A stretch of DNA of 64,000 nucleotides, from the NCBI GenBank assembly GCA_052426225.1, contig JBNJNM010000021.1, positions 1,550,001 to 1,614,000 of the forward strand, given 5' to 3'. Of the stretch, positions 22,399-44,088 are shown in pieces. A model generated the notes under the pieces. That model was given only the letters and a program-made list of their open reading frames with translations, did no database searches and was not told the origin of the DNA. The translations under genes were made by a program, and so were the position numbers. Positions within the stretch are counted from its first letter, which is position 1; each line of letters begins with the position of its first letter. The DNA is from Zancudomyces culisetae HAW-14-8 (Eukaryota > Fungi > Kickxellomycota).

Positions 22399-22470
22399 AG
22401 CCCAACGCGGGGGTCGAACCCGCAACTTGAGATTAAGAGTCTCACGCTCTACCGATTGAGCTAGCCGGGC
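22399..22470 (-). tRNA. tRNA-Lys(CTT)
   Basis: GCCCGGC TAGCTCAATCGGTAGAGC G TGAGA CTCTTAA TCTCA AGTT GCGGG TTCGACC CCCGC GTTGGGC T; full cloverleaf with 4-nt variable region. Confidence 0.93.
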
Positions 22471-22472
22471 AG

Positions 22473-22545
22473 TGGAGAACCGGGGTATCGATTCCCGTAC
22501 CTCTCGCATGCTAAGCGAGCGCTCTACCATTTGAGCTAGTTCCCC
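22473..22545 (-). tRNA. tRNA-Ala(AGC)
   Basis: GGGGAAC...CTCGC TTAGCAT GCGAG...GTTCTCC A; G3:U70 pair; one A:C mismatch closing the T-stem. Confidence 0.92.
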
Positions 22546-22547
22546 TG

Positions 22548-23203
22548 TGTCGAGATACTAGATCCGGGTATCACGGCATAGCAACGTGTATTGGATCAGA
22601 TTACACGTTGCTGAACAATTACATTGTTCATTAAAGAAACGTTGAGATATGTATGAATGATTGTTAACAACACATTCATACACCAACGTTTCAACGCAAA
22701 CATTAATATAGTAATATTGTTTTTTATGGATGATAGTTTAGTGATTATTTTTAAAGAGTTAGTTTATATAAATAAAAGACATAGGATGAATTGGAAAGCG
22801 TCATCCATGTCTTAATATACGGACGTATAAATAAAAATCCATGTCTTAATATACGGACGTATAAATAAAAATCTAGTTCATAATAAAAAATTATATCAAA
22901 ACTACAAAAATGTACTACTCAAATGGGTATGAAGATGAGGAGATGGCAATAAGTACCACTTCATCATCTTCCGGAAGAAGTACTGGCAGCAGCATGGATC
23001 AGGATGCTGGGGTATTAAGCCCCCAGACCTTGAAAGATCTGACCACTAGCGTGCGTCAGATACAGATCCGTAGTAGCCTAGGGAGTCCGTCGGGGATCAG
23101 ACTTTCCCCTACACCTCCAAAGGGGTGTGTGTCACCCCATTCTGCGCAAATGGGGATAAGGTTACAGAGCAATTGTGTAACCCCCAGATCCCATATTGCG
23201 ACA
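22548..23203. mobile_element. Solo LTR U1 (656 bp), 2 nt upstream of tRNA-Ala
   Basis: TGTCG...CGACA ends; TSD CCTG at 22544-47 and 23204-07; homologous to U2/U3 in its right half. Confidence 0.85.
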
Positions 23204-23221
23204 CCTGTGTCGCTGTTGTAA
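22910..23221 (+). CDS. LTR-internal Ser/Thr-rich ORF (U1), possibly a Gag N-terminus
   Basis: Shares GSSMDQDAGVLSPxTLxxLTxSVRQxQIRxS with U2/U3, with many synonymous differences; open through the LTR end. Confidence 0.55.
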   Translation: MYYSNGYEDEEMAISTTSSSSGRSTGSSMDQDAGVLSPQTLKDLTTSVRQIQIRSSLGSPSGIRLSPTPPKGCVSPHSAQMGIRLQSNCVTPRSHIATPVSLL

Positions 23222-23901
23222 TTTTAGTTTGCAGAAAATTTCTCAGGAAATTTCCGCAACTAAACCTACAAAAAGTTCTGCTAATAGAGGGGGATTGTTA
23301 CTGGAATAAGTTTTACTTTATTTAACCAGTCAACCCTACCTTTTTAGCTTATATTTAATTTAGTTTTATGTATTTATTACTTCAATAAATGCGATAAAAC
23401 TGGGTAAAATTACGCCCAACTCCTAAAATTTGGTGTGCAAAACAATCAATTTTGGTCCAAAAATTAGACTCTGATACCTTTCTGATACCCTTTGAAAATT
23501 GTGTTACGCTTCACTACCTATGTTTTTTTTTGGTTTTAGGTAGGTTTTTGCTCAAATCACAAATTTCAATTTTATAGAGTAAAATCAAGTATTTTAGAGC
23601 TAATTTGTATTTTATTTAATGAATAACTTTTAAAAATAAAAAGATAAAACCACCAAACTTGTGGTGGGGTTACTAGTAATATACTAGTACCTGACTAGGA
23701 TATTAATTAGAACTTTATTTAATAGAAACATAAAATAAAACAATTAAAACTGAATATTTCTCCAACATTTGGGTAATTTATTACCCAAGAAATCCCAGAT
23801 TTCTTGCTCGAACACCCGAGATAACGGTGGTTATTCGGTGTTTGAGAAGCTGTATGCTGTTCATCCAATAGTTTAGCTTGAGTAGAACTAAGCATACAAC
23901 A
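23214..23901. mobile_element. Solo LTR family A, copy 1 (688 bp), inserted 6 nt into U2
   Basis: TGTTGTA...TACAACA; TSD TCGC; near-identical to 36791-37476. Confidence 0.9.
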
Positions 23902-24174
23902 TCGCATTATTAACAATTTGTACAATAGCAAGTGGATGTGCCTGAAAATGGTACACTCAGTGCGATAATGCAAATTCATTTTTGTTTACTTTTTTTAAAT
24001 AAATTCAAATAATTTTGAGCTCAGTATGCAATCAATTTTTCATACTGAGCTAGTTCAATAATGATGAATGTAAAATGTAAAATGATCCCATGCATTTTAC
24101 ATTTATCATTAATAACAAACAAAAATTAATAATATTATAACAATAGTCATATTTTAGAATTTAGTTTATATATA

Positions 24175-24760
24175 TGTTGCTTTGTTGATTTTCCCTTTGG
24201 CTGGACTATTCTTATTCATCCCGGCTTTACCAAAGGTAGGGTTCGCTCTTTTGTACTTTCTTTGTTAAAAAATGGAGTAAGAGTTTAGTAAAAGTTTGTT
24301 TATTATGAAAAATTATCCTAAAGTGTTTTTAAAACTTGTAAGAAAAACTAATATATTAATGACTGTTTTAACGACTAGGTAATTTGGTAAGCCCCGCTAA
24401 CAATCCTCGTTTTGGGTAAGTATTAGCGTGTTCCAAATCCTGTGTATATTTTCAGTATTTGAGTACTTAGTTTTTTTTTTTGAGATAGCTTTATTTGACA
24501 TTATTTTTTTTTTTTGTAAAACGTAAAATCTGTTTTGTCCCTCTTTTTAATTGCTTTGCCCTCCCCCGTTTCATATATAGAAAGTTTCAAAGCTCTTTAA
24601 AAATAAACTATTAACTTTTAATAAAGCATAAACTGAATAAAACATTAAAAATAAGACATCTTTATACTATATTTGCATCGAATTTTGGCGTTCATTTTAG
24701 TTGAAGTTTTCTGCGTTTTTCGAATTGACAGTGAAAATCAATTAAATTTACATTTCCACA
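24175..24760. mobile_element. Solo LTR (586 bp) nested in U2
   Basis: TGTTG...CCACA; TSD TATA; absent from the equivalent position of U3 (~43595). Confidence 0.8.
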
Positions 24761-24905
24761 TATAGTGGTTTAAAATTTGAATAATATTTTAAAGGAGACG
24801 TATGGATGACATATGATAACCTCATCCATGTCTCGATACGGAATAAAGAAAATATATTTAAATAAATTTATATTATAAAAACCAAAATTAACTCTTTAAA
24901 TTACA

Positions 24906-25280
24906 ATGTTTAACAACAACTGGATTGGAACTGGGGATGACTCCAGGAGGGAGTCATACACTTCTACCAGCATGAGCAGGGGCAGCAGCATGGATCAGGA
25001 TGCAGGGGTATTAAGTCCCCGCACCCTTGGTGAGTTGACAGAAAGTGTCCGTCAACTCCAGATCCGTAGGAGCCCGGAAGAAATGTCGGTGAGTACAATT
25101 TCACCGACACTGTACAGGGGTATTAGCTCACCCGAGCACCCCTCGATGCACATTGCATTACGCAATAGAAGTGCATCAACCATCAGTGATCGTACCAGAA
25201 CCGGTATAACACGTGATGGTAGCGCTAATGGAAGCAGTGATACTTCACATTATGCGACACCTGTGTGTTTTGTCGTATAA
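24906..25280 (+). CDS. LTR-internal Ser/Thr-rich ORF (U2)
   Basis: 124 aa, nearly identical to 43735-44130; reads through the LTR terminus (HYAT = CATTATGCGACA). Confidence 0.55.
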   Translation: MFNNNWIGTGDDSRRESYTSTSMSRGSSMDQDAGVLSPRTLGELTESVRQLQIRRSPEEMSVSTISPTLYRGISSPEHPSMHIALRNRSASTISDRTRTGITRDGSANGSSDTSHYATPVCFVV

Positions 25281-25647
25281 ATGAATTTATTTATACTTTA
25301 TTTGTTTAATATATATATATAATTGTTCAATAACTAGTATTATCGTTATATTTTAAATACTATATAGTCGTTGAATCGCGTAATCAATATATACGTTGAA
25401 TTTCCAAAACCTATTTTTATTGTTTTATCTCGAATCTGATATCTCTCTCTTTTCTCCTTCCTCTAAAATAAATACTAAATATATTTTGAATCGAAACCGA
25501 AATAATTTCACTTATTTACGGTTACGTAATTAAACCAATAAAATTCCTAAAAAATATTATTTCAATTAACCAATAAAACTAAGTATTAATATAACTAAAA
25601 ATGTTAGACTAAAGTCGTATTTGGCACTATACGACAGCACTCCCCCT

Positions 25648-27821
25648 TCAAGCTATAATGTCCTCATTATAACGTGCTTGTTTAAACGTATTTAACTTAG
25701 GTCTCAGGCGACTAGTAATTTCAGGGATCATAAATCTCGATTCGTGATATAGCTTAAGTAAATCTCCATTGACCAAATCTCGGTTCCCAAGCTGGTCTGT
25801 TATAAGGTAGGCACCTTTACTAAACCTTTTTATAATAGTAAATGGACCCTCCCAGAGAGATTCCAATTTACCTCTATCGTATTCTACTACTTTCAAAACT
25901 TTATTTCCGACTTGAAATTTTGTGGGTTTAACAGTCTTATTATATCGAATCTTCTCGGCTTCTTTCGCTGCAACGGCTTTTCGAACACCGATTTTTCGAA
26001 TTTGTGGTAAATCAGATTGCATCAGTTTAAGTCGGTGCTCGATTTGTTCGACGTCGTCTTCGATTATCCCGTTCGTCTTCCACGTCGAAGGCATTTGCAA
26101 TTCGGTTCCATAAAGCATCTCGGCAGGTGTATATCCGGTACTTTTACTGTTCATTGTACGCATAGTAAGTAGTACTTTCCACAAGTACCTATCCCAATTA
26201 TTCTTATCTACTTTGCATATTTTTTGTAATAAACTTACTAATGTTTTATTTAACCGTTCAACTTGTCCATTCGACTGCGGGCGGTAAGAAGTAGTCGGAC
26301 TGTGGTCCAGTTGCAACCAGGAGTAAACTTCCGTCAATACATTACTGACAAAACTCGAACCTCTATCCGTTATTATCTTTTGCGGTACCCCATAGTAAGT
26401 CACAATTTCGTTTATTACAAAATCCACAATAGTCTCACTTAGTAAATTTTCAACTGCAACTGCAATAGGCCATTTAGTACAATAGTCTATTGCAGTTAGT
26501 ATATAGCGATTCCCTGTTTCAGAAACAGGATTAATGGGACCGATTGCGTCCATACCGAATACTTCGAAAGGCCTAACCGCATGTACTGGATTCAAACCGT
26601 GCTTTCGAGTTCTCCCATCCTTGTACGTCTGACAAGTGTGACACCTCTTGACGTAGTCGGCTACCTGCCTGTATAACCCTTTCGAATAGTGATCTCTGCT
26701 CACTCTAGCCCAAGTATTTTCGATCCCCTCGTGTGTTTCCTCATGGACCTTTTTGACTAGTTCGATGCTTTCCGCTTCCGTTAGAACTTCTTTCAACTTA
26801 CCTATTACCCATTTGTAAATAACACCATCTATCACCTTAAAATATTTTGCTTTTTTCTTTATTTTTTCAACTAATTTAACAGTAGCTTCTCGCGGTATAG
26901 TACCGCCTAATAAATAATTTCTAACTAAACTTTCTTCACTGTATACCATTCCGAACACCTCAACATGCTCATCCTCGGTTATCTCATGTATTCCACTTCT
27001 TGACAAATGGTCCGCTGGATTGACCTTTCCAGCTATATGGACTATATCAAACTCAAAGTTACGCAGAAACATAGCCCACCTGGCTAGTCTTCCACTTAGT
27101 TCTTCACCGTTAAACATGTTAAGTAGTGCTTTATGATCCGTCCTAATAATAAATTTTCTTCCGTAAACATAAAACTTGAACTTCTTTACGGCCCACACGA
27201 CCGCCAGTCCCTCCAGGTGACTAATTGAATAATTTCTTTCCGCCTTGTTTGTAGTTCGGCTCGCGTATTCAATCGGTCATTCATTTCCATCAACCTCTTG
27301 CGATAAAATCGCTCCGACTCCACATATCGCTGCGTCCGTTGTTACAATAAAAGTTTCGTCCCAATTCGGATGTGCAAGTACTGGCGTATTTGTCATAGCA
27401 TTTTTCATTCCTCGAAACGCTTCGTCTTGTTCTTTTCCCCATTTCCAACCTGTACCTTTTTTTAATAATTGTGTTAGTGGGTTAGCGACTATAGCATATC
27501 TTTCAATAAATTTTCTATAGTATCCAGTCATCCCTAAAAATGACTGAACTTCCTTCACACAAGTTGGAGGCTTCAAATTCGCAATTGATTCTACTTTTAC
27601 CGAACTTGTAGCTATACCATCACCAGAAATAACGTGCCCCAAGTAGTCAGTTCTATACAATCCTATTTTGCACTTGTCTTTGTGTAACTGTATTTGCCCT
27701 TCTTTTAATAACTCCATAACCTCTCTTAAATCTTCTAAATGACTGTCCTCGCTTTTAGAAAAAATTATTATGTCATCTACAAAGACAACAGCTTTTTTCC
27801 AAAGCACTTTTTTTAACACAG
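25648..27821 (-). CDS. Element B pol, 3' part (RT end, RNase H, integrase), one frameshift near 27276
   Basis: VFVDD, TTDAA, ADHLSR, HEETH...CHTC, ITDRGS, GQVER, WEGPF. Confidence 0.9.
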
Positions 27822-28233
27822 TGTCACGACTTGACACTAAGTACTATATGTTTACTTGGCTATGATTTATTTAATAAAATACTATGAGATGAAAAGTATT
27901 TTATTGCTAAAGTTTCCTAAAGCAATAAAATCCTTGTCCTTATATAGTTTTACAATATACAAAATTAATTGTAAAACATTATAAAAACTATACTTAAACT
28001 ATAACTTAAACTAAATAATATTAACTGTCAACTCCACAGTTAACATTTAATAATATGGGGTAAAACCAAATTATTAAAAATTATTAATTCTTACTCCATA
28101 ATTAATAATTTATGAAGTAAGAATTAAAGCGGAGAAACGTTAATAAATTTAACATTTGCTATTTTTAATAACATATTAAAAATAACAATAATGTCATGAA
28201 TGAATCATGACATCACTCCCCTCTAATGCCTAC

Positions 28234-31200
28234 TCAAGGACCTGGCTGATTCGGATATTGGTTGTGGAAGTCGGCTACAATTTCAGGGGCGTGGACATCT
28301 GATGCGTCTTCCCATGTTCTATCCTCAGGTGCGTATCCTTTCCAGTCGATTAGATATTTCAATTTACCTTTGGATATTTTAGAGTCGAGTATAGCAGCTA
28401 CTTCGTACTCTTCTTGGTTATCAACAATAACAGGTGGAGGTGGTAGTTCTTGAATACGGTTAAACGTTTCTGTGGCCTTGTATGGTTTCAAGAGTGATAC
28501 ATGAAATACAGGGTGTATTCTCATGGTTGCAGGAAGTTTGAGTCTTGCAGCTACTGGGTTAACCATCTCAATTATTTCAAATGGTCCAATGTATTTGAAA
28601 TCCAGTTTTTGAGATGGTCTCATGGTTTTAAGATTAGTTTGAGACAACCAAACCTTATCTCCTGGAGTGAGAACAACTTGAGGGTTTCTTTTGCGATCAG
28701 CAAACCTCTTGTAGTTCTCCTTGGCCTTACTTAGGTGTAGTTTTAACTCAGTTTGAATAGTTTGCAGATGACTAGCAAACTCCTGAGCACTTGGTACATT
28801 GGAATCATTGAGGTTGCTAATCATAAACTGGGGATCATACCCATAATTAGCATGAAATGGACTAACCTTGGTACTAGCGTGAGTTGCATTGTTGTAAGCA
28901 AACTCAGCCATCGGAAGCAACTGACACCAATTATCTTGTTGATAGTTAACAAAACACCTCAAATACTGTTCAAGTATTTGATTGATGCGTTCAGTTTGAC
29001 CATCAGATTGTGGGTGGTATGCAGTAGAGTGATGAAGTTTGATGTTTAGAAGTCGAGAGAGTTCGGTCCAAAACTTGGATACAAACTGTGGGCCACGATC
29101 GGAGACAATGCTGTTGGGAAGTCCATGTAGTTTAAATACATGATCCATAAAACTTGAGGCAGTAACAGAAGCAGATGGTGTACTTTTGAGAGGGATGAAA
29201 TGAGCCATCTTGGTGAGACGATCCACAACAACCAGTACAACAGTGTTGCCCTGTGCACGTGGTAGTTCCACAATGAAATCCATTGATACTGATTCCCAAG
29301 GACGATTGGGAGTATTCAATGGCATTAAGAGTCCTGATGGCTTAGTAGACATGTGTTTTGCTCGGTTGCAGGTATCGCAAGAGTCGATGTAGTCATTAAT
29401 TGTGGCCTTCATCTTTGGCCACCAGAACTGACGTGAAACCAAGGACATGGTTTTAGCGTGACCAAAATGTCCAGCTGGCAGTGAGTCATGACACATGGCA
29501 AGAACTTGAAGACGCAGTGATTCAGGAACAAAAATCCTATCGTTGTACAATAAGATATTATCAGAACAGGAGACTTTTGAGTTGTTTAAAAGTTCTTGAG
29601 CTTGAGTATCAGATTCAGTAATTGGTTTGATTTGAGAAATGATATCACTAGTCTGGCTGGTGTCAATAGCTGCAATTACAAACTTGGGTTGCCAGATAGG
29701 TCTATCCTCAAGATTCACCCCCTCCTTATGCTCATCCTTCCTAGATAGAGCATCTGCTTTACCGTTTTGTGATCCTGGACGGTAATTAACTCGATATCGA
29801 ACCGGGTTAAGAACAGGGCCCATCTTGCTTGACGCTGATTTAGAATCTTGGCGGAGCGAAAATACTCAAGATTCTTGTGGTCGGTGATGACCAAAACCGG
29901 ATGAGAGGCACCTTCTAGATGATGTCGCCACTGCTCGAGGGCTCATTTGATGGCTAGAAGTGCCTTGTCATAGATGTGGTAGTTTCTTTCAGCAGGATTC
30001 AGCGTTCGGGAATAGAAAGCTACAGGATGAGTTTCACCATTGATTTTCTGAGATAACACAGCTTCTAGAGCAAAGTTGGATGCATCACATTCGAGGAGAA
30101 ACTGAGTTTCTGGGTCAGGATGTGAGAGAACGGGAGCTGTGGTACATTGTTCCTTGAGAGTATCAAACGCAGATTGTTGTGCTGAGCCCCAGATAAACTG
30201 GGCATTATTCTTGATTAAGGAGGTAATCGGAGTTACAATACGTGAGAAGTCTTGGATAAAACGGCGATAGAAGTTAACAAATCCAAGGAAGGATTGGATG
30301 TCCTTGACTGATTTTGGTGTATCCCAATCCAATATTGCAGATACTCGAGACGGATCCATGACTAGGCCTGCAGGTGTGATTATGAAGCCTAAAAACTCTA
30401 CTCTTTCTTGGTCAAACTCACACTTTTCAAGTTTGGCGTAGAGTTTGTGAGCGATTAGTCTTTCTAAAACAGTACGAACGTGGGTGGTATGTTCTTCAGG
30501 TGTTGCAGAAAATACCAGAATGTCATCAAGGTATATGACAACATAGACGTCTAGGATATCACGAAAAACGTCATTGACAAATGATTGAAAGGTTCCAGGA
30601 GCATTAGCCAGACCGAATGGCATAACTTTGTACTCAAACTGACCATACTGTGTTCGGAAAGCCGTTTTTTCTTCATCGCCTTTCCTTATGCGTACCAGAT
30701 TGTACGCGCCACGCAGATCAAGTTTGGTGAAGATTTTGGCAGATTGAACTCGTTCCAGTAGCTCAGTCATCAACGGTAAAGGATACCGGTTACGTTTGAC
30801 GACTTTGTTTAGAGCTCTGTAGTCCACAACTAGTCTTAAAGAGCCATCTTTTTTACCTGTGAAGAATACAGGGGCTCCAGCAGGTGATTTCGAGCGGACT
30901 ATGAAACCTTTTGCAAGGTTTTCATCGATGTACTCCTTAAGCGCTGTTCGCTCCTTTGGAGCAAGTGGGTATATTGGTCCATAAGGTAAAACAGAGTTGG
31001 GTAGCAGATCAATTGGGTAGTCATAAGGGCGATGAGGAGGTAGAGTATCGGCCTTTTGTTTGTCAAAAGCTTGGCTGAGGTCTTGATATTTACTTGGAAT
31101 AGTAGCAGTTAAGGAATCAGGAGGTAGTGAAATTGGTTTGGCTTGGTTTATCATGCCTATCAAATGATAAACAGAGTGTTTTAACTTTTTGATAGGCACC

Positions 31201-32368
31201 TTTTGTTGGAACTCAATATCACAAGAACGTTTGCGAATTGGTTCAACCGGATCAGCTGGTGGTGGAGTCATCGGGCGTAACTCTTCAAAAGTTTCCATAT
31301 CAGCACTCTGAATACTATTTTCAGAGTCGGCACTTTGAATTGAGATGTCGCTGATATCGGAACTTGGTGAAAAGTACAGCTCAGAATCCAACGAATACAC
31401 TGATTCAAGTTCATAATCTAAATCTGTTTCATATTCTGGATCAGAAATTTTATCATCATTTTCAGAATATGAGGTGGATTCTTGATCCTGAACTGACTCA
31501 ATGACTTCTTGGTTGTGTACTTGGTTATGGGGATCCTGGTTTAAGTTTTTCTGGCTATTGACAGTAATTTCCTGGCTATTGTAAGTATTTTCCTGGCTAT
31601 GGTTTTCCTGGCTGTGGTTAGTCTCCTGGTTTAAATTTTCCTGGCTGTGGTTATTTTGGCAATGGATAGTCTGACTGTGGTTATCTTTAACATGGTTTTC
31701 CTGGTTGTTAGTTTCCTGACTTTGGGTTTCTTGGCTGAGGTTATTCTGGCTAATTAGTGCTGGTCCTGGTCCTGGTCCTGGTGCTTGTCTTGACATGACT
31801 GAGGTATTAGTCTTGATAATCGTTTGATTGGATCTTTGAGTTGAGAACCTTTTGATATTGCAGTGTTTTTGGCAATATGCATTATCAAAATGAATTAATC
31901 TCTTCTTCCAATTGATAGTGGGCTCATGGTGTTCAAGCCACGGAAGTCCTAAAATCATGTCAACATGGTGGGAGTTTATGATTTCAAACGTGGCTACTTC
32001 TTGGTGAACTCCAATCTTGATTTTGAGCGGGACAGTTTGGTGTGTGATTGGACCGGCAGACATTGGAGTACCATCTACAAACTCCACAGGTATTGGAGTT
32101 GTTTTGGAAATGGATGGAATGGAATGGTTAGATACAAAACCTTGGTTTATGAACAAACCAGAAGCACCTGAATCTACCATGGCGACGATTTGCAACTTTA
32201 CGTTACTTGGGAGTAGTAAGAAACAGTGACAAGAAAACGATGGGGGTTGTAGACGTCTCGGATACTGCTGACTTGATGGACAAAGGATCTGGAACGGGGG
32301 AAGTCTTTGGTTGGGATGGTTTGGTTCAGGATTGGCTTCCCAATTAAGCCTGAACCCGGTGGTTTCCC
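28234..32368 (-). CDS. Chromovirus Pol (PR-RT-RH-IN-chromodomain) with disruptions near 29.8-29.95 kb
   Basis: [23 protein letters not shown]...[25 protein letters not shown]...YLIDWKGY...TWE. Confidence 0.92.
32311..32368 (-). promoter_or_regulatory. -1 frameshift signal: GGGAAAC plus predicted pseudoknot
   Basis: G GGA AAC (32362-68), 5-nt spacer, stem GGTTCAGG/CCTGAACC, loop TTGGGA complementary to downstream TCCCAA; lies in the gag/pol overlap. Confidence 0.8.
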
Positions 32369-33233
32369 TGCTTAGTTTTCTTAAGCTTTTCGGGACAGGT
32401 GGTAACTTGGTGGCCTTCTCCGCCGCAGTAATAGCAGAGACCAAGTTTCATTCTGCGTTCTCTCTCGGTTGGAGAGACGACACGCTGGACAGCATCCACT
32501 TGCATGGGTTCTGGCTGAGAACCGGTGGCTTGTACATAAGGCTGAATGCCTCTTCTTCTTCTGGCTTTGTTCTCCTTGCGCCTGGTTAACCTGGCATCAA
32601 TGAGCATTGCAGCATTGATGTAACCTTCCAAATCATCAGGATTTGGAATAGCGCAAGGGTGTCGAGCACGGCTTCGCTCAGACCCTCGGCAAACTGGGAT
32701 ACGAGAGCTGACTCGTTCCAGTCGAGATCCATCATTAAACGACGGAACTCTGATGCATACATTGAGACAGGTGAGGTGCCCTGTTTCAATGCCCTGATAG
32801 CATCATTGGCTGTTTGAGACCGTTGAGGGTCATCAAACACCTTGGCGAACTCTTTCATAAAGAGTTCGTAGTCCTGGAGCACAGGGCTACCCTTTTCAAT
32901 GTAAGGGCTAGCCCAACGGAGCGCATTCCCTGTGAGAAGGGACATAACAAGACCAACCTTGTTGGTGGCGGACGGGTAGTGGTCTGGGTGGGTAAAGAAC
33001 AGTAGACGGCATTGGTTTACAAAACCACGAAAGTTGCTGCGATCTCCGTCATACCTTTCTGGCATGGCTATGCGGGCAGCGGCTGGCTGGACTGGGATTG
33101 GTACAGGTGCGGCCTGGGCGGACTTTTCTTGTTCTGCTGGCGGATCAGGTGGAGCAGATTGTTGGGATTTCAATCGCTCGTTTTTTTCTTTAAGCCTTTG
33201 ATAATCGGCTAACAATTCACGGTATTTAGACAT
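32344..33233 (-). CDS. Chromovirus Gag (PEG10/RTL1-like capsid plus CCHC knuckle), one frameshift near 32640
   Basis: PERYDGDRSNFRGFVNQC, LTGNALRWA, LKQG, PEPMQVD, CYYCGGEGHQVTTC. Confidence 0.9.
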
Positions 33234-33654
33234 AATAGTAGGTAGTGTAAGAGCAATAAAATAATTCACGACTTGACACTAAGTACTATATGTTTACTTG
33301 GCTATGATTTATTTAATAAAATACTATGAGATGAAAAGTATTTCATTGCTAAAGTTTCCTAAAGAAATAAAATCCATGTCCTTATATAGTTTTACAATAT
33401 ACAAAATTAATTGTAAAACATTATAAAAACTATACTTAAACTATAACTTAAACTAAATAATATTAACTGTCAACTCCACAGTTAACATTTAATAATATGG
33501 GGTAAAACCAAATTATTAAATATTATTAATTCTTACTCCATAATTAATAATTTATGGATTAAGAATTAAAGCGGAGAAACGTTAATAAATTTAACATTTG
33601 CTATTTTTAATAACATATTAAAAATAACAATAATGTCATGAATGAATCATGACA

Positions 33655-35781
33655 CACAGTCTCCATCGTTCTTTGAAAGGTAGAGGGGCTGTTTGTCAAA
33701 CCGAACGGCATGACGTTGTAGAGATAACTCCCCCCTCCTGGCAAAGCAAATGTGGTTTTCTCCTTATCCTCTTCTGACATCTTTATTTGCCAAAAGCCGC
33801 TGAGTGCATCTAATGTTGTAAAGATACACGCACCAGCTAAGGCCATAAAAAGGTCCTGAATGATCGGCAACGGGTACGAGTCTTTAACCGTCACCGCGTT
33901 TAACTTCCTATAGTCTGCGCAGATGCGCAGCTTACCATTCTTCTTCTGGACAACAACAACTGGGGAGCACCACTCGGCGTTACTTGGTGCGATAACTTTT
34001 TGCTCAAGCATCCTATCGATTTCCAACCCTACTTCCTCTTGCAGTCGAAATGGTATCCTATAGGGCCTCTGTTTGATTGGCCTGATATCTGTGAGTACTA
34101 TCTTATGCTCTGCAACGTTAGTTTGTTTTAATTTATCTATATCCTCTACAAATAAATCATCATATTCCTCTAACAGTTCCACTATACCATTATTTAATTT
34201 TCCTTGTGTTCCTATGGGCGCTTCAGAAACTAAATATAAATCCCATTCTTCTTCAACCACCGGCGTCGCTTTGGTTGTTACCAGCGGGGTAACTACTTCG
34301 GCTCTGTCAACTGGCAGTCTCAACTCCGGAATTCCTAGGTTTAGGTTTGCTTTATGCTTAAGCAGCCAGTCCATACCTAAAATTAAGGTAGGTACCTTGT
34401 TGCCCAGCACCACTAAGGATGCAACAAACTCAATTCTACTAATCATAATAGGTACTCCCGTAACTATCCCAAGAGTCTCATGTCGTTTACCATCCGCCGT
34501 GATGATAACATGTGAACTTTTGTGTTTCGGCTCCAAACCAATCTTCAGCAAAGCACCAGTAGTTACGACGGAGCAGGCGGCTCCCGTGTCCACTACAGCT
34601 TTCCACTGTTGTTGGTATATCTCCACAGACATATTACAGTTAGTAGTAGTCTTTTCTTGCAGTCTTATCTCGTTCAGGGCAGTGTTAGGTCCAACCTCGA
34701 CAATGTTTTTCCACTCTTGCGCTATCTTCTCTGAGTTGTGCAACAGCTGTATCATGCTTATTTTAGGGTAAACCTTTTCTAATTCTTCCCTTAAATTAAA
34801 CTTTTTACCTTTATCAATCCTAACAAACTCAGGTTGCACACTCCTCTCAGTTAAGACTTCCGGTTCCTCTGTCTCCCTGGTGTTCCTAACTTTTGCTGGC
34901 CTGCCTACTCTGCCCATTGACTCTACTGCTTTCCGTTTCTCGACTGTAAGTACTTCATCTTCTATAGTGATTTCTTTGTCCATATCTAAGAAATTCACCT
35001 TCTTCTCCGCATGCTCCTTCTGGAACAGTGGACATTCAAATCTCCGGTGACCTTTTTCATGGCAGTAGTAGCACTCCCAAGCGCTTGCCCTTTCCACTTT
35101 TGACTGACTCACGTATTCCTTTTTAGGGGCGACTGTCTTATCCAACTTTTCTAAGAGACTGACGCTAAGCTCCTGGAATGTCTTGAGAAACTCTCCAAAC
35201 TGCCCGGACTCCGTGGTTAACTCTTTAACCGTCTTTCCAGCTCGGGTAGCGGCGTTCTTAGTAGCTGGCTTGCTACTCTTCGCTAACGCCAGAGTATCTC
35301 CCCTACCATTCTTACTTTGCTCCATCTTGGTTACAAAGGTTAGTACCTGCTCTCTATCCAATTCTTCCTTGTCAGATAGTCTTTCTCTAATCTCATCCGA
35401 GAATGTACTCACTAGCGAACCAATCTTTGTCTCTTCTTCTTTTATTCCTACTTGTTCCCAGAGCTTCTCAAGCTCCATCTCTAACTCTTCTAGACTTTCA
35501 AACTCGGTGCGTTTGATAGATCCCAACCTGTTCCAAGCTCCACCTGTGGAGTACACATTGCTGAATTTCTTCCTGAATTCCTTAGCAAAGACATCCCAAG
35601 TCGTAAAGCTCTTCTTGTTTCTCTTGTACCAGATTGTCTCGGACTTCCCAAGCCACAACTTAACTAACCCAACCCAATCCTCAGGGGCCCACTTGTTAAT
35701 CTTAGCAATCAATTGGAAATCATCAATCCAGTCCTCGGCGTTGATTCCTTTTCCACTCTCAAACTTAGTGACTTTGTCCAT
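33655..35781 (-). CDS. Element B gag-PR-RT 5' part (single frame)
   Basis: CYYCHEKGHRRFEC, VDTGA, DYRKLN, LDALSGFWQI, MPFGL. Confidence 0.92.
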
Positions 35782-36191
35782 CGTTAATAACTTTAAATGT
35801 AGATTACGACAGAAGGCACCACTGTCGTATAAATGAATTTATTTATACTTTATTTGTTTAATATATATATATAATTGTTCAATAACTAGTATTATCGTTA
35901 TATTTTAAATACTATATAGTCGTTGAATCGCGTAATCAATATATACGTTGAATTTCCAAAACCTATTTTTATTGTTTTATCTCGAATCTGATATCTCTCT
36001 CTTTTCTCCTTCCTCTAAAATAAATACTAAATATATTTTGAATCGAAACCGAAATAATTTCACTTATTTACGGTTACGTAATTAAACCAATAAAATTCCT
36101 AAAAAATATTATTTCAATTAACCAATAAAACTAAGTATTAATATAACTAAAAATGTTTGACTAAAGTCGTATTTGGCACTATACGACAGTT

Positions 36192-36787
36192 TGTTGTATC
36201 CAAAAGCATCAACTTAAATTTACCGCTTTCATTGCAGCTAAATAGCAGAGAAATCAATTTTGAAAAAATTGTTTCCTGAGCAATTCAATTTAGAGTACAA
36301 AAATTATGACCATGTCATAAATTTTTGTCAACTTTACAGCCAATTTAATAGTACAAATCGATTTATTTTTTAGTCGAATCGATTTTATCCTTTATTAGTG
36401 GATTTATTTTTAATCAATTATATTAGTATATTATTAGTATAAATTGAAAAATTTGTAAATCCGACCAAAACCACACTAAAAGTAAAAATAAACATATATC
36501 GAGAGGCGTAATACTATTTATTTAGTGTAAGGAAAGGGCCATTTTGGCTATATTTTCCAGGTTTTGGGCGGAATTCTTTTATATAAAATTATTTTTACCA
36601 AAAATTGTGGAAATTGTCCAGTTGTGTGCTTTCCGAGGGGGTTTTATAGATAGTGGTTAACTGGCTAGAACTGGTAAATCCTGTGTCAGTAATAACCACC
36701 CTTCTAGGGAACCGTGATTGATATTAGTGGAAGTTTTTTGGGAAAATCCTATTGGACTAGTACTAAAAAATGAAAACGAATTCAACA
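36192..36787. mobile_element. Solo LTR C (596 bp)
   Basis: TGTTG...CAACA; TSD TGTT recovered after removing element B. Confidence 0.8.
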
Positions 36788-36790
36788 TGT

Positions 36791-37476
36791 TGTTGTAATT
36801 TTAGATTGCACAAAATTTCTCAGGAAATTTCCGCAACTAAACCTACAAAAAGTTCTGCTAATAGAGGGGGATTGTTACTGGAATAAGTTTTACTTTATTT
36901 AATCAGTCAAATCTACCTTTATAGCTTATATTTAATTTAGTTTTATGTATTTATTACTTCAATAAATGCGATAAAACTGGGTAAAATTACGCCCAACTCC
37001 TAAAATTTGGTGTGCAAAACAATTAATTTTGGTCCAAAAATTAGACTCTGATACCTTTCTGATACCCTTTGAAAATTGTGTTACGCTTCACTACCTATGT
37101 TTTTTTTTGGTTTTAGGTAGGTTTTTGCTCAAATCACTAATTTCAATTTTATAGAGTAAAATCAAGTAATTTAGAGCTAATTTGTATTTTATTTAATGAA
37201 TAACTTTTAAAAATAAAAAGATAATACCACCAAACTTGTGGTGGGGTTACTAGAATATACTAGTACCAGCCTAGCTATTTTATTTAAACTTTATTTATAG
37301 AAACTTAAAATAAAACAATTAAAACTAAATATTTCTCCAACATTTGGGTAATTTATTACCCAAGAAATCCCAGATTTCTTGCTCGAACACCCGAGATAAC
37401 GGTGGTTATTCGGTGTTTGAGAAGCTGTATGCTGTTCATCCAATAGTTTAGCTTGAGTAGAACTAAGCATACAACA
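36791..37476. mobile_element. Solo LTR family A, copy 2 (686 bp)
   Basis: Near-identical to 23214-23901. Confidence 0.9.
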
Positions 37477-37479
37477 TTG

Positions 37480-40400
37480 TGTCGTGAATTTAAATTACCG
37501 GAAATTATATAAGAGTAAAAATGACTGTAATTTTCAAAATTGGTAATATTAAATTCACGTAACATTGAAGAAATCTGAGAAAGTTACATCTGGAAATCTG
37601 AGAAAGTTACATCTGGAAAATCTGAAAATGTTACAACCACGACATGTGAATTTGATAAGCTGATAAAAGCAAATAATCAACTACACGGGGAAACAGCAAA
37701 ATTTAATTTAGTATGATTTAATTATTAGTTAGTTAAGTATAAATTTATTTTTTAGTAAATTGGTTGCCAAAAAAAAGTATATTAAGGCAACAAAATTCTA
37801 AATAAATTCATCATGGAGTTTCGACTTTAAAAATAATTTATAAATTATACGACAGTATTTATAATAAATATATAATTAATGGTGATCCAGCCAGGACACA
37901 AACAGCAAGGAAATTGAGTAACAAACAGCAAATTTAAGCAAAAATCATGATTGGAAATTCAGCAAGAGTACCAAGACTCGCAGAACCGCCAGTATTCAAT
38001 GGATCCTCAGATCAGAATGCAAACATCTGGATTAAAGGTTTGAACTGTTTGCCCGTAGTGAGAGTTGGACTGATGAACAAAAGTTGGAGTATATTGACGT
38101 CTACTATGACCCGAGAGTTATACTTTGGAATGAGTCCGTGCAAAGTGAAAAAACTACCTGGAAAACGTATAAGAAAGCGTTTTTGAAGAAGTACACAAGC
38201 AAGGAATCCGTATTAAACTCATGGCGTGCACTACAAAGAATCAGACAGTTACCTTCGGAGAATATAGAAGACTTTATAAGTAGACTTGAGAGCCTATTTG
38301 TATCTGCCAAAGTCACGGACAAAGCTATCCAGTATCAATGCCTTATGACTGCCCTGTTACCAAGTTACCAAACTGAGATCCTGAAAAGTCGAATCAACAG
38401 CTATTACGAGGCCATTCAAAAGGCAAAAGACACAGAGGAGTTAGAAAGGTTTATACAGGACAACGTATACACCTACAACCAAAAAAGGGATAAAAGGGTT
38501 TCAGAAGGAAGACAAGAGCCAAGAATTCAGACTCATCCAGGCAAAGAGTTGGCATCCCACCGCACTAAGCCTAGACCTAAAGCTGATACTAACCCTCCAC
38601 AGGCAAAGCCCACCAACCATAGTAGTAATGAAGCTAACATGACCTTCAAGTACACTACACCTACCTGCTACACCTGCAATGAGGTCGGGCATATAAGTCC
38701 GCAATGTCCACTAAAAGCTAGGCCTACCATCCAACCCAGCTTCAACAATAAAGGAAAAGAGCTAAGTGTAGTAGAGTTATTTCAAGACCATCAAAATGAC
38801 TTAGTAGATGATATTGAGCTCCGCTGGAAAGAGCTCAGTATTATCGAGAAGCGTAAACTAATTACAGAAAATGATAAAAATATAAAAAAGAAAAATAAGT
38901 TGGAAAAACATGAAGCAGTAAACGAGGAATATGAAATAGCTAATTCTCTCGCACCGCAGTTTAAAACAGACCAGGAAACACCTGAAGGACAAAGTAAACC
39001 AATGGGAAGAATGATTGCCAAGGCAAGGGACAAGCCAACCTATTCAGTTAAACAAGACTTAGGATCTATCAAAGCTAGTATAACCTTGGAGCAGCTGATA
39101 AAAGTCTCGCCGATGGTCAGGTCAGAACTTAAGGAAGTATGCGGAACGGATAACCTAGAAAATGTCAAAGCCCTAAGCACCATAACTCAGCCTCCTAGCA
39201 CCAACTGCAAAGCCACCATATCTCTGTTCAATTGCGAATGTACAGTGGTAATCGACACAGGTGCAGCCTGTAGTGTGATGACACAAGCACTAGCAGATAA
39301 ATTTCAGTTGAGTATAGATCACTCGGCGCAAGAAATACTCCTCATGGCCGATAGAACCCCACAAGTGACTCTAGGAAAGGTTTGGAAAGTCCCAGTACTC
39401 ATCAAAAACATAAGTTTCCCAGCAGATGTATTGATCATGGCAGGAAATAACAATGATACCTTTGTGCTAGGCGTAGATTGGATAAAGAAACACAACGTCA
39501 TCATCGATTTAAACAATGACAAGGCGTCCATACCTTACAAAAACAGCAATATTTCATGGGATATATCTACTCAGGTCAAATGCAGCGATGAACTGGTAGG
39601 ATGGGCAAAGGAGGTTTCGTTAATTGAAGGCACAGCACAAACCAATACAGAGATCATCCAGTTAATTTCAGACTACAAAATGATATTCGCATCGTCATTG
39701 GAGGAACTCACCAGTACAGATCTAGTTCAGCATGAAATAGACACAGGAGATAGCAAGCCCATCAGACTACGACCTTACAGGGTCCCACAAGCTATGAAAG
39801 AGAAAGTCAGAGAAGAACTCTCAAAAATGTTGGAAAATGGTGTTATTGAAAAGTGCCAATCAGACTGGTGCGCTCCTGTGGTAACCATCTGGAAGAAAAA
39901 CGGTAAGCTCAGGGTGTGCTCTGATTACCGTAAGCTAAATGCCGTTACTAAAAGGGACACGTACCCACTCCCGAACATATCAGATATTTTCAATGCACTT
40001 GCAGGAGCTCAGTATTACACAACGCTAGACGCCCTTAGTGGGTTCTGGCAAGTGAAAATCAGGGAACAAGACAAAGAAAAATCCGCTTTTTCCTTCCCTG
40101 GAGAAGATTGTTTTGTTATAAAGTAATGCCGTTCGGACTGAGTAATAGTCCAGTCACGTTCCAGCGTTTAATGGAGACCGTATTGCAGCCACTTCTTTGG
40201 AAATCAGTAGTCGTCTTTATTGATGACATAGTTGTTTATTCACCTTCTTTTGACCAACATTTAATTGATTTAAAACTAGTATTTGAACTAATACGGAGCG
40301 CAAAAATAAAATTAAACGAGGAGAAATGCGTATTCGCTCAGCAACGCATCTCCTACTTAGGGCACGTAGTTTCAAAGGAAGGAATTGAAACTGACCACAA

Positions 40401-42747
40401 CAAGACCTTAGCTATGGCAAAAGTTCCGTACCCTAAAAACGTAAAAGATGTTCAAAGTTTCTTGGGCATGACCGGGTATTACCGGAAGTTTATTAAAGAT
40501 TATGCAAAGATAAGTAAACCATTGACAAAGTTACTAAGAAAAGATTGTCAGTGGAACTGGGACAGCAGCTGTTCGATAGCTGTAGACACTCTTAAAGAGA
40601 TCCTCATCAATCCACCAGTTTTGAAACACCCAGATTGGGGTATGACCTTTACGATCACTACTGATGCGTCCAAATTAGGTTTAGGCGCAATTTTGAGCCA
40701 AAACTACAACGGAAAAGATTGTCCTATAGCATATGCAAGCCGTACTTTATCAAAGGCTGAAGAAAATTATGCTATAACTCACCTAGAAGGACTAGGTGTA
40801 GTTTGGGGAGTTACTCACTTCAGACATTACTTACTTGGGAGACATTTTAAAATTTTCACTGACCATTCTGCACTCATTAATATCTTTAAGTCCAAAGAGC
40901 CTACGGTCGTCTAGCTAGATGGGAATTGATATTAATAGAGTATGATTACGAGATTGAACATCGCAAAGGGACTAATAATCCCGCTGATTATTTATCTAGA
41001 TCAAGCCCAGATCCACACGTTCCAGAAACTATGAATTCAAACGCATTGTTTGCTATGGACATTCTAAGATACAACTCTCTAGTATCATACCTAACCAATA
41101 GGTCATATCCGTCTGGTATGACTGAAGAAGAAAGAGAAAAGTTTAGAAACAAACTAATCCGTACAAACTGCGTGAAGGAAAACTAGTAACAGTAAGTAAA
41201 AAATTTGGAGAACGGGAAGTTCTTAATGAAGAAAACGCAGAAGAAGTTGTTAGAAGAGTTCATGAAGATGGCCACAGTGGAGTTGGTAACACTTGGGAAA
41301 AAGTGAAGTTGTTATACACTGGTCCAAGAATGTTTGATATAGTAAAAAGAGTCGTAAAATTTTGCGAGTTATGCCAAAAGTACAAAGGGCATGTAAAAAG
41401 AGTTAACCCTTTAAGTCCAATATGTTCATCAGCTCCATTCGAAATACTAGGTATTGATGCAATGGGCCCTATAAACCCAGTATCATCCAGCGGCAACAAG
41501 TATTTATTGACCGCCATGGACTACAACACTAAGTGGCCAATTTCAAGAGCCGTGGCTAACATCACCACAGAAACAGTTATTAATTTCTTAATTTATGATG
41601 TAGTCGCATTATACGGTGTTCCAAAGAGATTGATATCCGATCGCGGTTCAAATTTCATAAGCGAAACGGCTGTTCAATTTTATAAGTTCTTGGGTATTGA
41701 TCACCACCCGACTACGGCTTATAGGCCACAGGCCAATGGCCAAGTAGAAAGGTTTAATCAAACACTCAAAAATGTTTTGTCAAAGTTGTGCTATAAAGAC
41801 AAGACCAATTGGGATAAGTATTTGTGGAAAGTCCTCCTAATTATTCGTTCATCGAAACATCGGAGTATAGGTATAAGTCCATCTGAAAGTCTGTATGGTG
41901 TAAAAATAATAACACCCATATATTGGAATCCTGTGGTAACCAGTGAAAATGAATCAGAAGCTATATTGGAAAGGCTGAAGTTTATCAAAGAAGAGCTTCC
42001 AGTAATAAGAGACCAAGCGTACACTAAGTTGGTAGCAAATAAGCGCTACATAAAGACACATTATGATAAAAAAGTTAGTCCAACAAAGTACAAATTAAAT
42101 GACCAAGTACTTAGAGCCGTGGCGATGACCCAGCACAAATTTTCAGTTCGCTGGGTTGGCCCTTATCGCATAGTTAGGGTACTGGATCATGGTACTTACA
42201 TTATCATGGATAATGAAGGTAACAAGGATCATGTCAATGGTGACAGATTAAAGCCATATAATGACAGAGGATAATGATTCCTGATGTTGCTCCTAGTAAC
42301 CTCCGCACGTCCTTACAGTTCTATAAGTCAATTAACTTGTCAGATCGGGACGTCTGAAATTAAGAGGGGGTCTGTCGTGAATTTAAATTACCGTAAATTA
42401 TATAAGAGTAAAAATGACTGTAATTTCCAAAATTGGTAATATTAAATTCACGTAACATTGAAGAAATCTGAGAAAGTTACATCTGGAAATCTGAGAAAGT
42501 TACATCTGGAAAATCTGAAAATGTTACAACCACGACATGTGAATTTGATAAGCTGATAAAAGCAAATAATCAACTACACGGGGAAACAGCAAAATTTAAT
42601 TTAGTATGATTTAATTATTAGTTAGTTAAGTATAAATTTATTTTTTAGTAAATTGGTTGCCAAAAAAAAGTATATTAAGGCAACAAAATTCTAAATAAAT
42701 TCATCATGGAGTTTCGACTTTAAAAATAATTTATATATTATACGACA
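37480..42747 (+). mobile_element. Full-length Ty3/Gypsy element D (same clade as B)
   Basis: 375-bp LTRs 37480-37854 and 42373-42747 (~3 differences seen); PPT AAGAGGGGG; right flank GTTG; internal ~22-nt tandem repeat in the LTR. Confidence 0.95.
37947..42357 (+). CDS. Element D gag-pol, split by ~5 apparent single-base frameshifts
   Basis: CYTCNEVGHISPQC, IDTGA, VFIDD, TTDAS, HEDGH...CELC, SDRGS, WVGPY. Confidence 0.9.
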
Positions 42748-42751
42748 GTTG

Positions 42752-42973
42752 TGTTGTATAATTACATGTTTAACGTCCTACTGAGTAATATAATTACCCA
42801 GTATTATACAGGACGGGACTTTTATTATTATATATTAGTACTATAATTATTTTGGGTGAAAAAAACAATTTATTTATTATTCAAAACTAGACTATTTAAT
42901 GCATTAAATAATACTATTTAAACTAACCAATAAAATACAAGGAAATACAGGTAGATAATTCCACTATATAACA
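42752..42973. mobile_element. Solo LTR E (222 bp)
   Basis: TGTTGTATA...TATATAACA; homologous to M (46038-46270). Confidence 0.75.
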
Positions 42974-42978
42974 GTCTG

Positions 42979-43311
42979 TGATGTAGAACTTACAAGTTCT
43001 AAATTATTTCTTAATATAATTCTCTATCCGTGTAGTATAAAATTAAGTATTATTTTTTATATGTTTATACTATATTTAACTAATTTTAAATGTGGTTAAG
43101 AGTTATTTTATTCAATTAAGTTGTGGGCGATTGTATTAATCCCAAATATGTCCTATAATTTGTGCTAACTATAATCTAAATTTTAACTATCCTAATTATG
43201 AATGTTGAACAATAACCACAGGGGGAGAAAAAGTCCAATCTAAAAATACTGCTAATTACATAAATTATAAAATAGGTAGATAAATCGTTCCATCGTATTT
43301 CTCATACGACA
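42979..43311. mobile_element. Solo LTR F (333 bp)
   Basis: TGATGTA...TACGACA; shares ACCACxGGGGG...GTCCAATCT with G and I. Confidence 0.75.
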
Positions 43312-43318
43312 TTCATGT

Positions 43319-44088
43319 TGTCGCATTTTTAACAATTTGTACAAGAGATACACGGATGTGCCTGAAAATGGTACACTCAGTACGAAAATGCAAATTCATT
43401 TTTTGTTATTTATTTTTAAATAAATTCAAATAATTATTGAGCTCAGTATGCAATCAAATTTTCATACTGTGCTAGTTCAATAATGATGAATGTAAAATGT
43501 AAAATGATCCCATGCATTTTACATTTATCATTAATAACAAACAAAAATTAATAATATTATAACAATAGTCATATTTTAGTATTTAGTTTAAATATAGTGG
43601 TTTAAAATTTGAATAATATATTAAAGGAGACGTATGGATGACATATGAAAACCTCATCCATGTCTCGATACGGAATATTATAACAAAACAATTAAATAAA
43701 ATTATATATAAAACCAAAAGATATATTAGCAATAATGTTTTTAAACAGTTGGATTGGAACTGGGGATGACTCCAGGAGGGAGTCATACACTTCTACCAGC
43801 ATGAGCAGGGGCAGCAGCATGGATCATGTTGTAGGGGTATTAAGTCCCCGCACCCTTGGTGAGTTGACAGAAAGTGTTCGTCAACTCCAGATCCGTAGGA
43901 GCCCGGAAGAAATGTCGGTGAGTACAATTTCACCGACACTGTACAGGGGTATTAGCTCACCCGAGCACCCCTCGATGCACATTGCATTACGCAATAGAAG
44001 TGCATCAACCATCAGTGATCGTACCAGAACCGGTATAACACGTGATGGTAGCGCTAATGGAAGTAGTGATACTTCACATTATGCGACA
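43319..44088. mobile_element. Solo LTR U3 (770 bp)
   Basis: TGTCGCAT...ATGCGACA; uninterrupted relative of U2; flanks CATG(T)/CATG. Confidence 0.88.

Follow-up and report, generated by a model that had tools for sequence, protein, structure and literature searches.

Nested Ty3/gypsy Retrotransposons Upstream of tRNA Genes in the Fungus Zancudomyces culisetae and Their Loose, Family-Dependent Integration Distances

Introduction

A 64,000-nucleotide (nt) stretch of the genome of the kickxellomycete fungus Zancudomyces culisetae HAW-14-8 (assembly GCA_052426225.1, contig JBNJNM010000021.1, positions 1,550,001 to 1,614,000 of the forward strand), hereafter the window, contains nested Ty3/gypsy elements and solo long terminal repeats (LTRs) which, according to self-BLAST and junction read-outs, are piled up continuously from position 22546 rightward, upstream of a tRNA-Ala(AGC) gene. 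Six insertions in this stack possess exact 4-bp target-site duplications (TSDs), most of the order of arrival can be read from the way in which the elements are nested, and at other tRNA genes of the same genome members of these families lie a few nucleotides from the tRNA 5′ end, at distances that differ slightly from family to family. It is quite likely that the stack was built by RNA polymerase III (Pol III)-directed integration of the type known from Ty3 and Tj1, with loose family-dependent offsets. A preliminary description of the window had suggested a family-specific ruler, precise to one base. The main result of the present analysis is a correction of this idea, from a one-base ruler to a loose tendency.

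Target-Site Duplications and Order of Insertion

The target gene, tRNA-Ala(AGC), was placed by ARAGORN at 22472-22545 on the minus strand, where its first base, G1, is the complement of C22545; this +1 position was confirmed by the T8 anchor. Element boundaries were derived from self-BLAST and junction read-outs. By means of a peel-back script, elements were removed singly in the proposed order and the flanking 4-mers compared, with shifted registers serving as controls. In the sequence as assembled, all four positions agree for U1 (CCTG), A1 (TCGC), F (TATA), U2 (CCTG), B (GTTT), and C (TGTT), compared with zero to one match out of six in the shifted-register controls. The preliminary description had listed five of these duplications, all of which proved exact in the peel-back, and F is a sixth clean insertion that was missing from its list.

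The newest insertion, a U1 solo LTR of 656 bp on the plus strand (22548-23203), lies 2 nt from the tRNA gene. The proximal copy of its CCTG duplication is located at 22544-22547, with further copies at 23204-23207 (common to U1 and U2) and 25260-25263, and two of the four bases are tRNA +2 and +1, the other two lying upstream of the gene. The U2 solo LTR (23208-25259, plus strand), whose offset is also 2 nt, is interrupted by two other solo LTRs. One is A1 (688 bp, 23214-23901, minus strand), situated 6 nt inside U2, that is, 8 nt from tRNA G1; the other is F (586 bp, TGTTGC...TTCCACA, 24175-24760), which was delimited by a gap in the alignment of U2 with U3 (another LTR of the U2 family, farther out in the stack), by its junctions, and by the peel-back. 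Next comes a 7-nt junction, TGTGTTT (25264-25270), in which the left-hand copy of the TSD is located for each of D, A2, C, and B. It is followed by the full-length Ty3/gypsy element B (25271-36188, minus strand, with LTRs at 25271-25636 and 35823-36188), a C solo LTR of 596 bp (36192-36787), the A2 solo LTR (36791-37476, minus strand), and the full-length Ty3/gypsy element D (37480-42747, plus strand, with LTRs at 37480-37854 and 42373-42747). In B, C, and A2, one base of the duplication is the initial T of the LTR that follows, so each of these three elements landed 1 nt inside its predecessor, as previously described.

The right-hand flanks of A2 (TTGT) and D (GTTG) were also seen as reported before. 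In the assembled sequence, each differs at one position from its left-hand counterpart (GTGT for A2 and TTTG for D), and the addition of a single T beside 25266 renders both duplications exact. The peel-back script reproduced the earlier statement that, with this extra base, all TSDs through D match and the offsets become 2 nt for U1 and U2, 7 for D, 8 for A2, 9 for C, and 10 for B; as assembled, D, A2, C, and B stand at 6, 7, 8, and 9 nt, respectively. The loss of one T at the 25260-25270 junction is the most economical repair, since this one event would mend two duplications, whereas substitution would take two, one each for A2 and D. A TSD length of 3 or 5 bp and an insertion on the right-hand side were also considered for the A2 mismatch, and neither gave a fit. 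With the lost T restored, the sequence within 25255-25275 would read TGTGTTGTTT, and if the duplications of A2 and D are imperfect it would read TGTGTGTTT. Of seven sequencing runs retrieved, three contain part of the stretch; in the four runs compared, the matching contigs cover only the U2-family LTR, up to 25259, and none crosses 25260-25270; one of them then enters an unrelated flank and therefore represents another U2-family copy.

From the nesting, it follows that the elements arrived in the order D, A2, C, B, U2, and then A1 and U1, with which the identity of the LTR pairs (99.2% in D and 99.7% in B) agrees. The preliminary description had given the same order, including A1 before U1. 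This last step is derived from the targeting rule; the duplications do not bear on it, because the targets of A1 and U1 do not overlap. The clean chain stops at E, as had been noted earlier: no TSD match was found, with or without the added T, for the E solo LTR (42752-43311, flanks GTTG and TTCA) or for U3 (43319-44088, plus strand), whose flanking 4-mers, ATGT and CATG, are offset from each other by one base.

Two insertions in the stack have a different relation to the tRNA gene. F was approximately 277 nt away from it on arrival and was therefore not aimed at it; its family was absent from the 80 loci fetched from the rest of the genome and does not seem to be aimed at tRNA genes. In addition, a chromovirus (27824-33657, minus strand) is nested in the reverse transcriptase (RT) region of B. 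Its LTRs are 98.2% identical (with one indel), compared with 99.7% in the host element B, which is the opposite of what the nesting order leads one to expect; assembly error, gene conversion, or an unequal substitution rate are possible reasons for this reversal.

Distances from tRNA Genes across the Genome

The LTR families were located in the window's own genome, and the flanks of 80 of the 124 LTR-flank regions were fetched. ARAGORN identified 33 tRNA genes in these 80 loci, and many of these genes are separated from an LTR terminus by no more than a few bases. At approximately 20 loci, representing at least 15 tRNA species, the tRNA 5′ end lies 2-14 nt from the LTR terminus. The offset is defined here as the number of nucleotides between the LTR end and tRNA +1, and the values below are those outside the window unless otherwise indicated. 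The preliminary description had proposed that offsets be tabulated at other loci, and this tabulation revealed a distribution that is narrow and family-dependent, with a spread of about 1 nt either way. All 34 insertions of families other than U1 and U2 were found at 6-10 nt (6 nt in three cases, 7 in 13, 8 in 12, 9 in four, and 10 in two); they comprise A, C, and D-like copies together with a mixed group, which includes the B copy at locus L023 and leaves aside the one obtained by peeling at L078.

Among individual families, A was located at 6 nt once, at 7 nt five times, and at 8 nt five times (n = 11), so the fixed distance of 8 nt suggested by its two copies in the window is not maintained at independent loci. 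The five C copies have offsets of 7, 8, 8, 8, and 9 nt, the four D-like copies 7, 6, 7, and 7 nt, and the two B copies 7 and 9 nt, instead of the 10 nt derived from the window. A mixed set of families ending in TTATACGACA (n = 14) covers 6-10 nt. The mean offset increases from D-like (6.75) through A (7.36) to C (8.0), and this difference is reflected in a Kruskal-Wallis test (p = 0.045) and a one-sided Jonckheere permutation test of D < A < C (p = 0.007). The exact ruler is thus replaced by a trend, a loose family-dependent tendency with approximately 1 nt of spread either way, in which the proposed rank of D, A, and C survives in the means.

The U2 family stands apart from the others. Its nine copies have offsets of 3 nt (four copies), 4, 6 (two copies), 10, and 12 nt, with a mode of 3 nt and a range of 2-12 nt if the window copy is included (n = 10). 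Five of the nine lie at 4 nt or less, compared with none of the 34 copies of other families (Fisher p = 1e-4). At tRNA-Thr(AGT), tRNA-Tyr, and tRNA-Ile, U2 is found at 3-4 nt and A, B, or C at 7-8 nt from the same tRNA species; therefore, the offset is decided by the element family and not by the tRNA. When U2 lies at 2-3 nt, its duplication takes in tRNA base +1 or +2, as in CCTG (twice, in the window), ACTG (L024), and TATC (L070). Three U1 copies were measured at 9, 13, and 14 nt.

Exact junctions were obtained from genome-wide pattern searches joining an LTR end to the tRNA box-A motif, from which hits that did not resemble tRNAs were discarded by eye (three in one search and two in another), and the peel-back of L076 and L078 supplied two more offsets. 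The tRNA +1 was fixed by the T8 anchor, which corrected the ARAGORN position in six genes where it was off by one. An 83-nt gene reported as tRNA-His(gtg) (L070 3200-3282 and L071 912-994) looks like an intron-bearing tRNA-Tyr, which begins with CCGAGAA and whose T8 is the ninth base as reported, and its +1 was shifted accordingly. Some tRNA-LTR junctions are present as inverted duplicates, namely tRNA-Glu/Met with U1, 15 kb apart (L010 and L011; G000:C10:1277359 and 1292186), and tRNA-Ile with C, 72 kb apart (G000:C11:1960868 and 2033481); each pair was entered once in the statistics. Insertions with a 4-bp TSD outside the window include those at L009, L024, L034, L040, L070, L071, L076, and L078.

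Orientation and the organization of the target genes are also informative. Family A has the same direction as the tRNA gene in all 13 cases (binomial p = 5e-4 for 12 of 12), and in its full-length copies the polypurine tract GGGGGGGAGG precedes the tRNA-facing LTR, which indicates that A is transcribed in the direction of the tRNA; C and U2 occur in both orientations. Where two tRNA genes form a dicistronic pair, in the fetched loci as well as in the window, the LTRs in every case lie upstream of the first gene, and none separates the two. The tRNA-Ala(AGC) gene of the window is itself the first of such a pair, the second being tRNA-Lys(CTT) (22399-22470, minus strand, ARAGORN) after a 1-nt spacer, and this pair also occurs with an LTR stack of its own at L053. 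Other tight pairs are Glu-Met (2-nt spacer), Thr-Thr (5 nt), Pro-Cys (approximately 4 nt), and Ser-Gly (3 nt); the pairs, including Ala-Lys, were observed at L010, L023, L053, L064, L067, and in the window (22399-22545). Beyond U3, older solo LTRs continue the window's stack to at least approximately 46.3 kb.

What Determines the Integration Site

Offsets of 7-8 nt are equally observed where the gap contains no LTR-end remnant (for example, TTAATAT, GCCAATT, and CATTATAT), which argues for the distance from the tRNA gene, and against the sequence of the neighbouring LTR, as the determinant of the site. The interlocked duplications can be understood in the same way: because all families aim at one narrow window of positions, a 4-bp target usually overlaps or abuts the edge of the previous LTR. 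The fetched loci contain 76 junctions between LTRs, and the commonest spacers in these are 3 nt (19 junctions), which corresponds to insertion 1 nt inside the predecessor, and 4 nt (15 junctions), which corresponds to flush insertion. At several loci, an LTR end in ...ACA abuts a next LTR that lacks its first T (ACA|GTTG or ACA|GTCG; L025 3459, L076 1624, L055, L052, L080, and L045 1001). The junction at L076 is accounted for by a U1 duplication, GTTG, that equals bases 2-5 of A.

It might be argued that the predecessor itself provides the target, the integrase preferring the terminal TGT/ACA of an LTR already present, so that each newcomer would land about 1 nt inside the older LTR regardless of the distance to the tRNA gene, and the series 7, 8, 9, and 10 nt in the window would be the product of a ratchet. 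The three successive insertions 1 nt inside a predecessor fit this idea, as do the 3-nt spacers, the commonest class, and the many gaps that consist of ACA-like remnants. However, 4-nt spacers are nearly as frequent and spacers of 0-2 and 5-8 nt were also seen; offsets remain at 6-10 nt even in deep stacks; U1 and U2 bypassed the edge of the adjacent LTR and inserted at 2 nt; and gaps free of LTR remnants show the usual offsets. Since the 3-nt spacer is the commonest class, three such events in succession are unremarkable (with a probability of about 0.25 for each, p is approximately 0.016, for a pattern that was noticed post hoc). We therefore consider it unlikely that the predecessor sequence sets the site.

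Less probable still is a hard ruler, with one fixed distance for each family (2 nt for U, 7 for D, 8 for A, 9 for C, and 10 for B) and with all deviations attributed to mutations or assembly errors. In its favour, the TSDs through D match when the T is added, A then stands at 8 nt twice in the window, and the rank D < A < C recurs in the means at independent loci. Nevertheless, loci with intact TSDs place A at 6, 7, and 8 nt (one, five, and five copies), C at 7-9 nt, B at both 7 and 9 nt, and U2 anywhere from 2 to 12 nt, a spread that would require over half of the junctions to have acquired an indel, and the hard ruler is largely refuted by these observations. Finally, that mis-assembly or recombination between repeats produced the apparent nesting and duplications is extremely improbable: the greater divergence of the chromovirus LTRs than of those of their host and the unmatched flanks of E and U3 might point in this direction, but six exact TSDs were found in the nested register against zero to one of six in shifted controls, other contigs show this architecture again at many independent tRNA loci, and matching 4-mers are not made by recombination.

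Element Content and Integrases

The LTR pairs of B and D have the form TGTCG...CGACA, and the Pfam domains Retrotrans_gag, RVP_2, RVT_1, RT_RNaseH, and rve are found between them in Ty3/gypsy order, by which B and D are classified as Ty3/gypsy (Metaviridae) LTR retrotransposons. Full-length U1 elements elsewhere in the genome are approximately 5.8 kb long and autonomous, with an integrase composed of rve and Integrase_p58_C. The integrases are homologous over their whole length, with identities of 46% between B and D, 40% between U1 and D, and 37% between U1 and B. Pfam detected no chromodomain in the integrases of B, D, and U1, the nested chromovirus being the only element in whose integrase one was recognized. 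Approximately 5-36 residues follow Integrase_p58_C in D, U1, and B; the chromodomain of Ty3 itself also escaped sequence methods.

The U2 family has a much reduced coding capacity. Its elements are 3.67 kb long (for example, L021 1001-4670) and contain a single open reading frame of 826 amino acids, which begins within the 5′ LTR and encodes a Gag-protease protein with a CCHC knuckle and an aspartyl protease. Neither RT nor integrase was found in U2-family elements; hence they must be mobilized in trans. Tandem arrays were also observed. One, of the U2 family (L024 1001-7562), has the structure LTR-body-LTR-body-LTR with a spacing of 2,900 bp and only one duplication, ACTG, which flanks the array as a unit, and in another (L060-L063, G000:C12:1000162-1014660) four B-family LTRs approximately 4,712 bp apart form a tandem of three B elements that share LTRs.

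Proposed Mechanism

The proposed explanation is that related Ty3/gypsy families without a recognizable chromodomain (U1, U2, A, B, C, D, and others) enter a window of a few base pairs upstream of the first tRNA gene in a Pol III unit, where integration generates 4-bp target duplications at a site fixed by the distance from the tRNA gene. By analogy with Ty3 and Tj1, the integrase would be tethered to the Pol III initiation complex, either to TFIIIB or to Pol III. Each newcomer would land between the tRNA gene and the previous element, or in the first bases of the latter, and older elements would be pushed outward, which would account for the interlocking duplications and for an order of arrival that can be read off as D, A2, C, B, U2, A1, U1. 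Within this common window of positions, each family has its own preferred distance, with a spread of about 1 nt on either side, 6-7 nt for D-like elements, 7-8 nt for A, about 8 nt for C, and 7-9 nt for B, and differences among the integrases might be responsible for these shifts. The non-autonomous U2 family lies mostly at 2-4 nt, where a staggered cut would take in tRNA +1 or +2 and these bases would be regained through the duplication. It is a tentative proposal, and perhaps not the likelier outcome, that related integrases within one genome have measurably different distances (approximately 6.7 nt for D-like elements, 7.4 nt for A, 8.0 nt for C, and 3 nt for the U2 type) and that those acting on U2-type elements cut across the first base or bases of the tRNA gene, which are then restored by duplication.

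Several points weigh against Pol III-directed integration as proposed here. The families are known from genomic copies, and the tether is drawn by analogy. Not every insertion in the stack conforms to the scheme: F and the chromovirus inside B were not aimed at the tRNA gene, and E and U3 have no matching duplications. The samples are small for individual families (four D-like, five C, and two B copies), and some copies are missed by pattern searches that require an exact LTR end and a canonical T8-A14 motif. Moreover, U2 does not have an integrase of its own, and the offsets of U1 (2, 9, 13, and 14 nt, including the window copy) are unlike the U2 mode of 3 nt, although U1 is the most obvious autonomous partner of U2.

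Comparison with Known Systems and Significance

Insertion near tRNA genes is a standard case of retrotransposons choosing "safe" sites, and to our knowledge its mechanistic detail has been worked out only for Ty3, an element that duplicates 5 bp of its target. In Saccharomyces cerevisiae, Ty3 integrates in a 2-3 bp window at the Pol III start via an interaction between integrase and TFIIIB, and the vestigial chromodomain of its integrase has been called a "ruler" (bioRxiv 10.1101/2021.07.27.453949), a notion equivalent to that of an integrase-determined offset. Measured from the mature tRNA end, however, Ty3 lies at approximately 15 bp (PMC5006619), compared with 2-10 nt here, and Pfam recognizes no chromodomain after p58_C in the integrases of B, D, and U1.

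A closer parallel in distance is offered by Tj1, a Ty3/gypsy element of Schizosaccharomyces japonicus that inserts 5-11 bp upstream of the mature tRNA 5′ end, always in the orientation of the tRNA gene, and produces a 5-bp TSD (PMC4600332). Families A-D at 6-10 nt and the uniform orientation of A (13 of 13) resemble this pattern. In contrast to Tj1, the TSD is 4 bp, C and U2 are found in both orientations, U2 approaches to 2-4 nt, and many co-resident families with slightly shifted preferences occupy one window of positions; furthermore, the activity of Tj1 was demonstrated by experiment, whereas the families described here are known from genomic copies. In dictyostelids, DGLT-A is located approximately 15 bp (13-33) and Dp_NLTR-A 2-6 bp upstream of tRNA genes (PMC5006619). 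These also are retrotransposons of one genome that each keep their own distance from tRNA genes, with Dp_NLTR-A as close as U2, but they belong to separate classes or distant lineages (Dp_NLTR-A is a non-LTR element), whereas the families in Z. culisetae are related Ty3/gypsy elements whose distances differ by 1-5 nt.

A full-text literature search for work on targeting by retrotransposons in Zancudomyces retrieved no paper. In general terms, the stacks extend a known kind of system to a new lineage, and the present analysis adds a verified chain of duplications, the correction of the ruler to a loose preference, and the closer position of U2. If the U2-type position is true, it would be the closest approach of an LTR element to a Pol III gene that we know of.

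The ordered stacks represent a record of relative insertion times. In addition, related families that share a window of a few bases and show small, reproducible shifts offer comparative material on what in the integrase sets the distance, and if the related integrases do have measurably different distances, they would constitute a natural series for understanding how the geometry of the integrase-Pol III complex sets the integration site.

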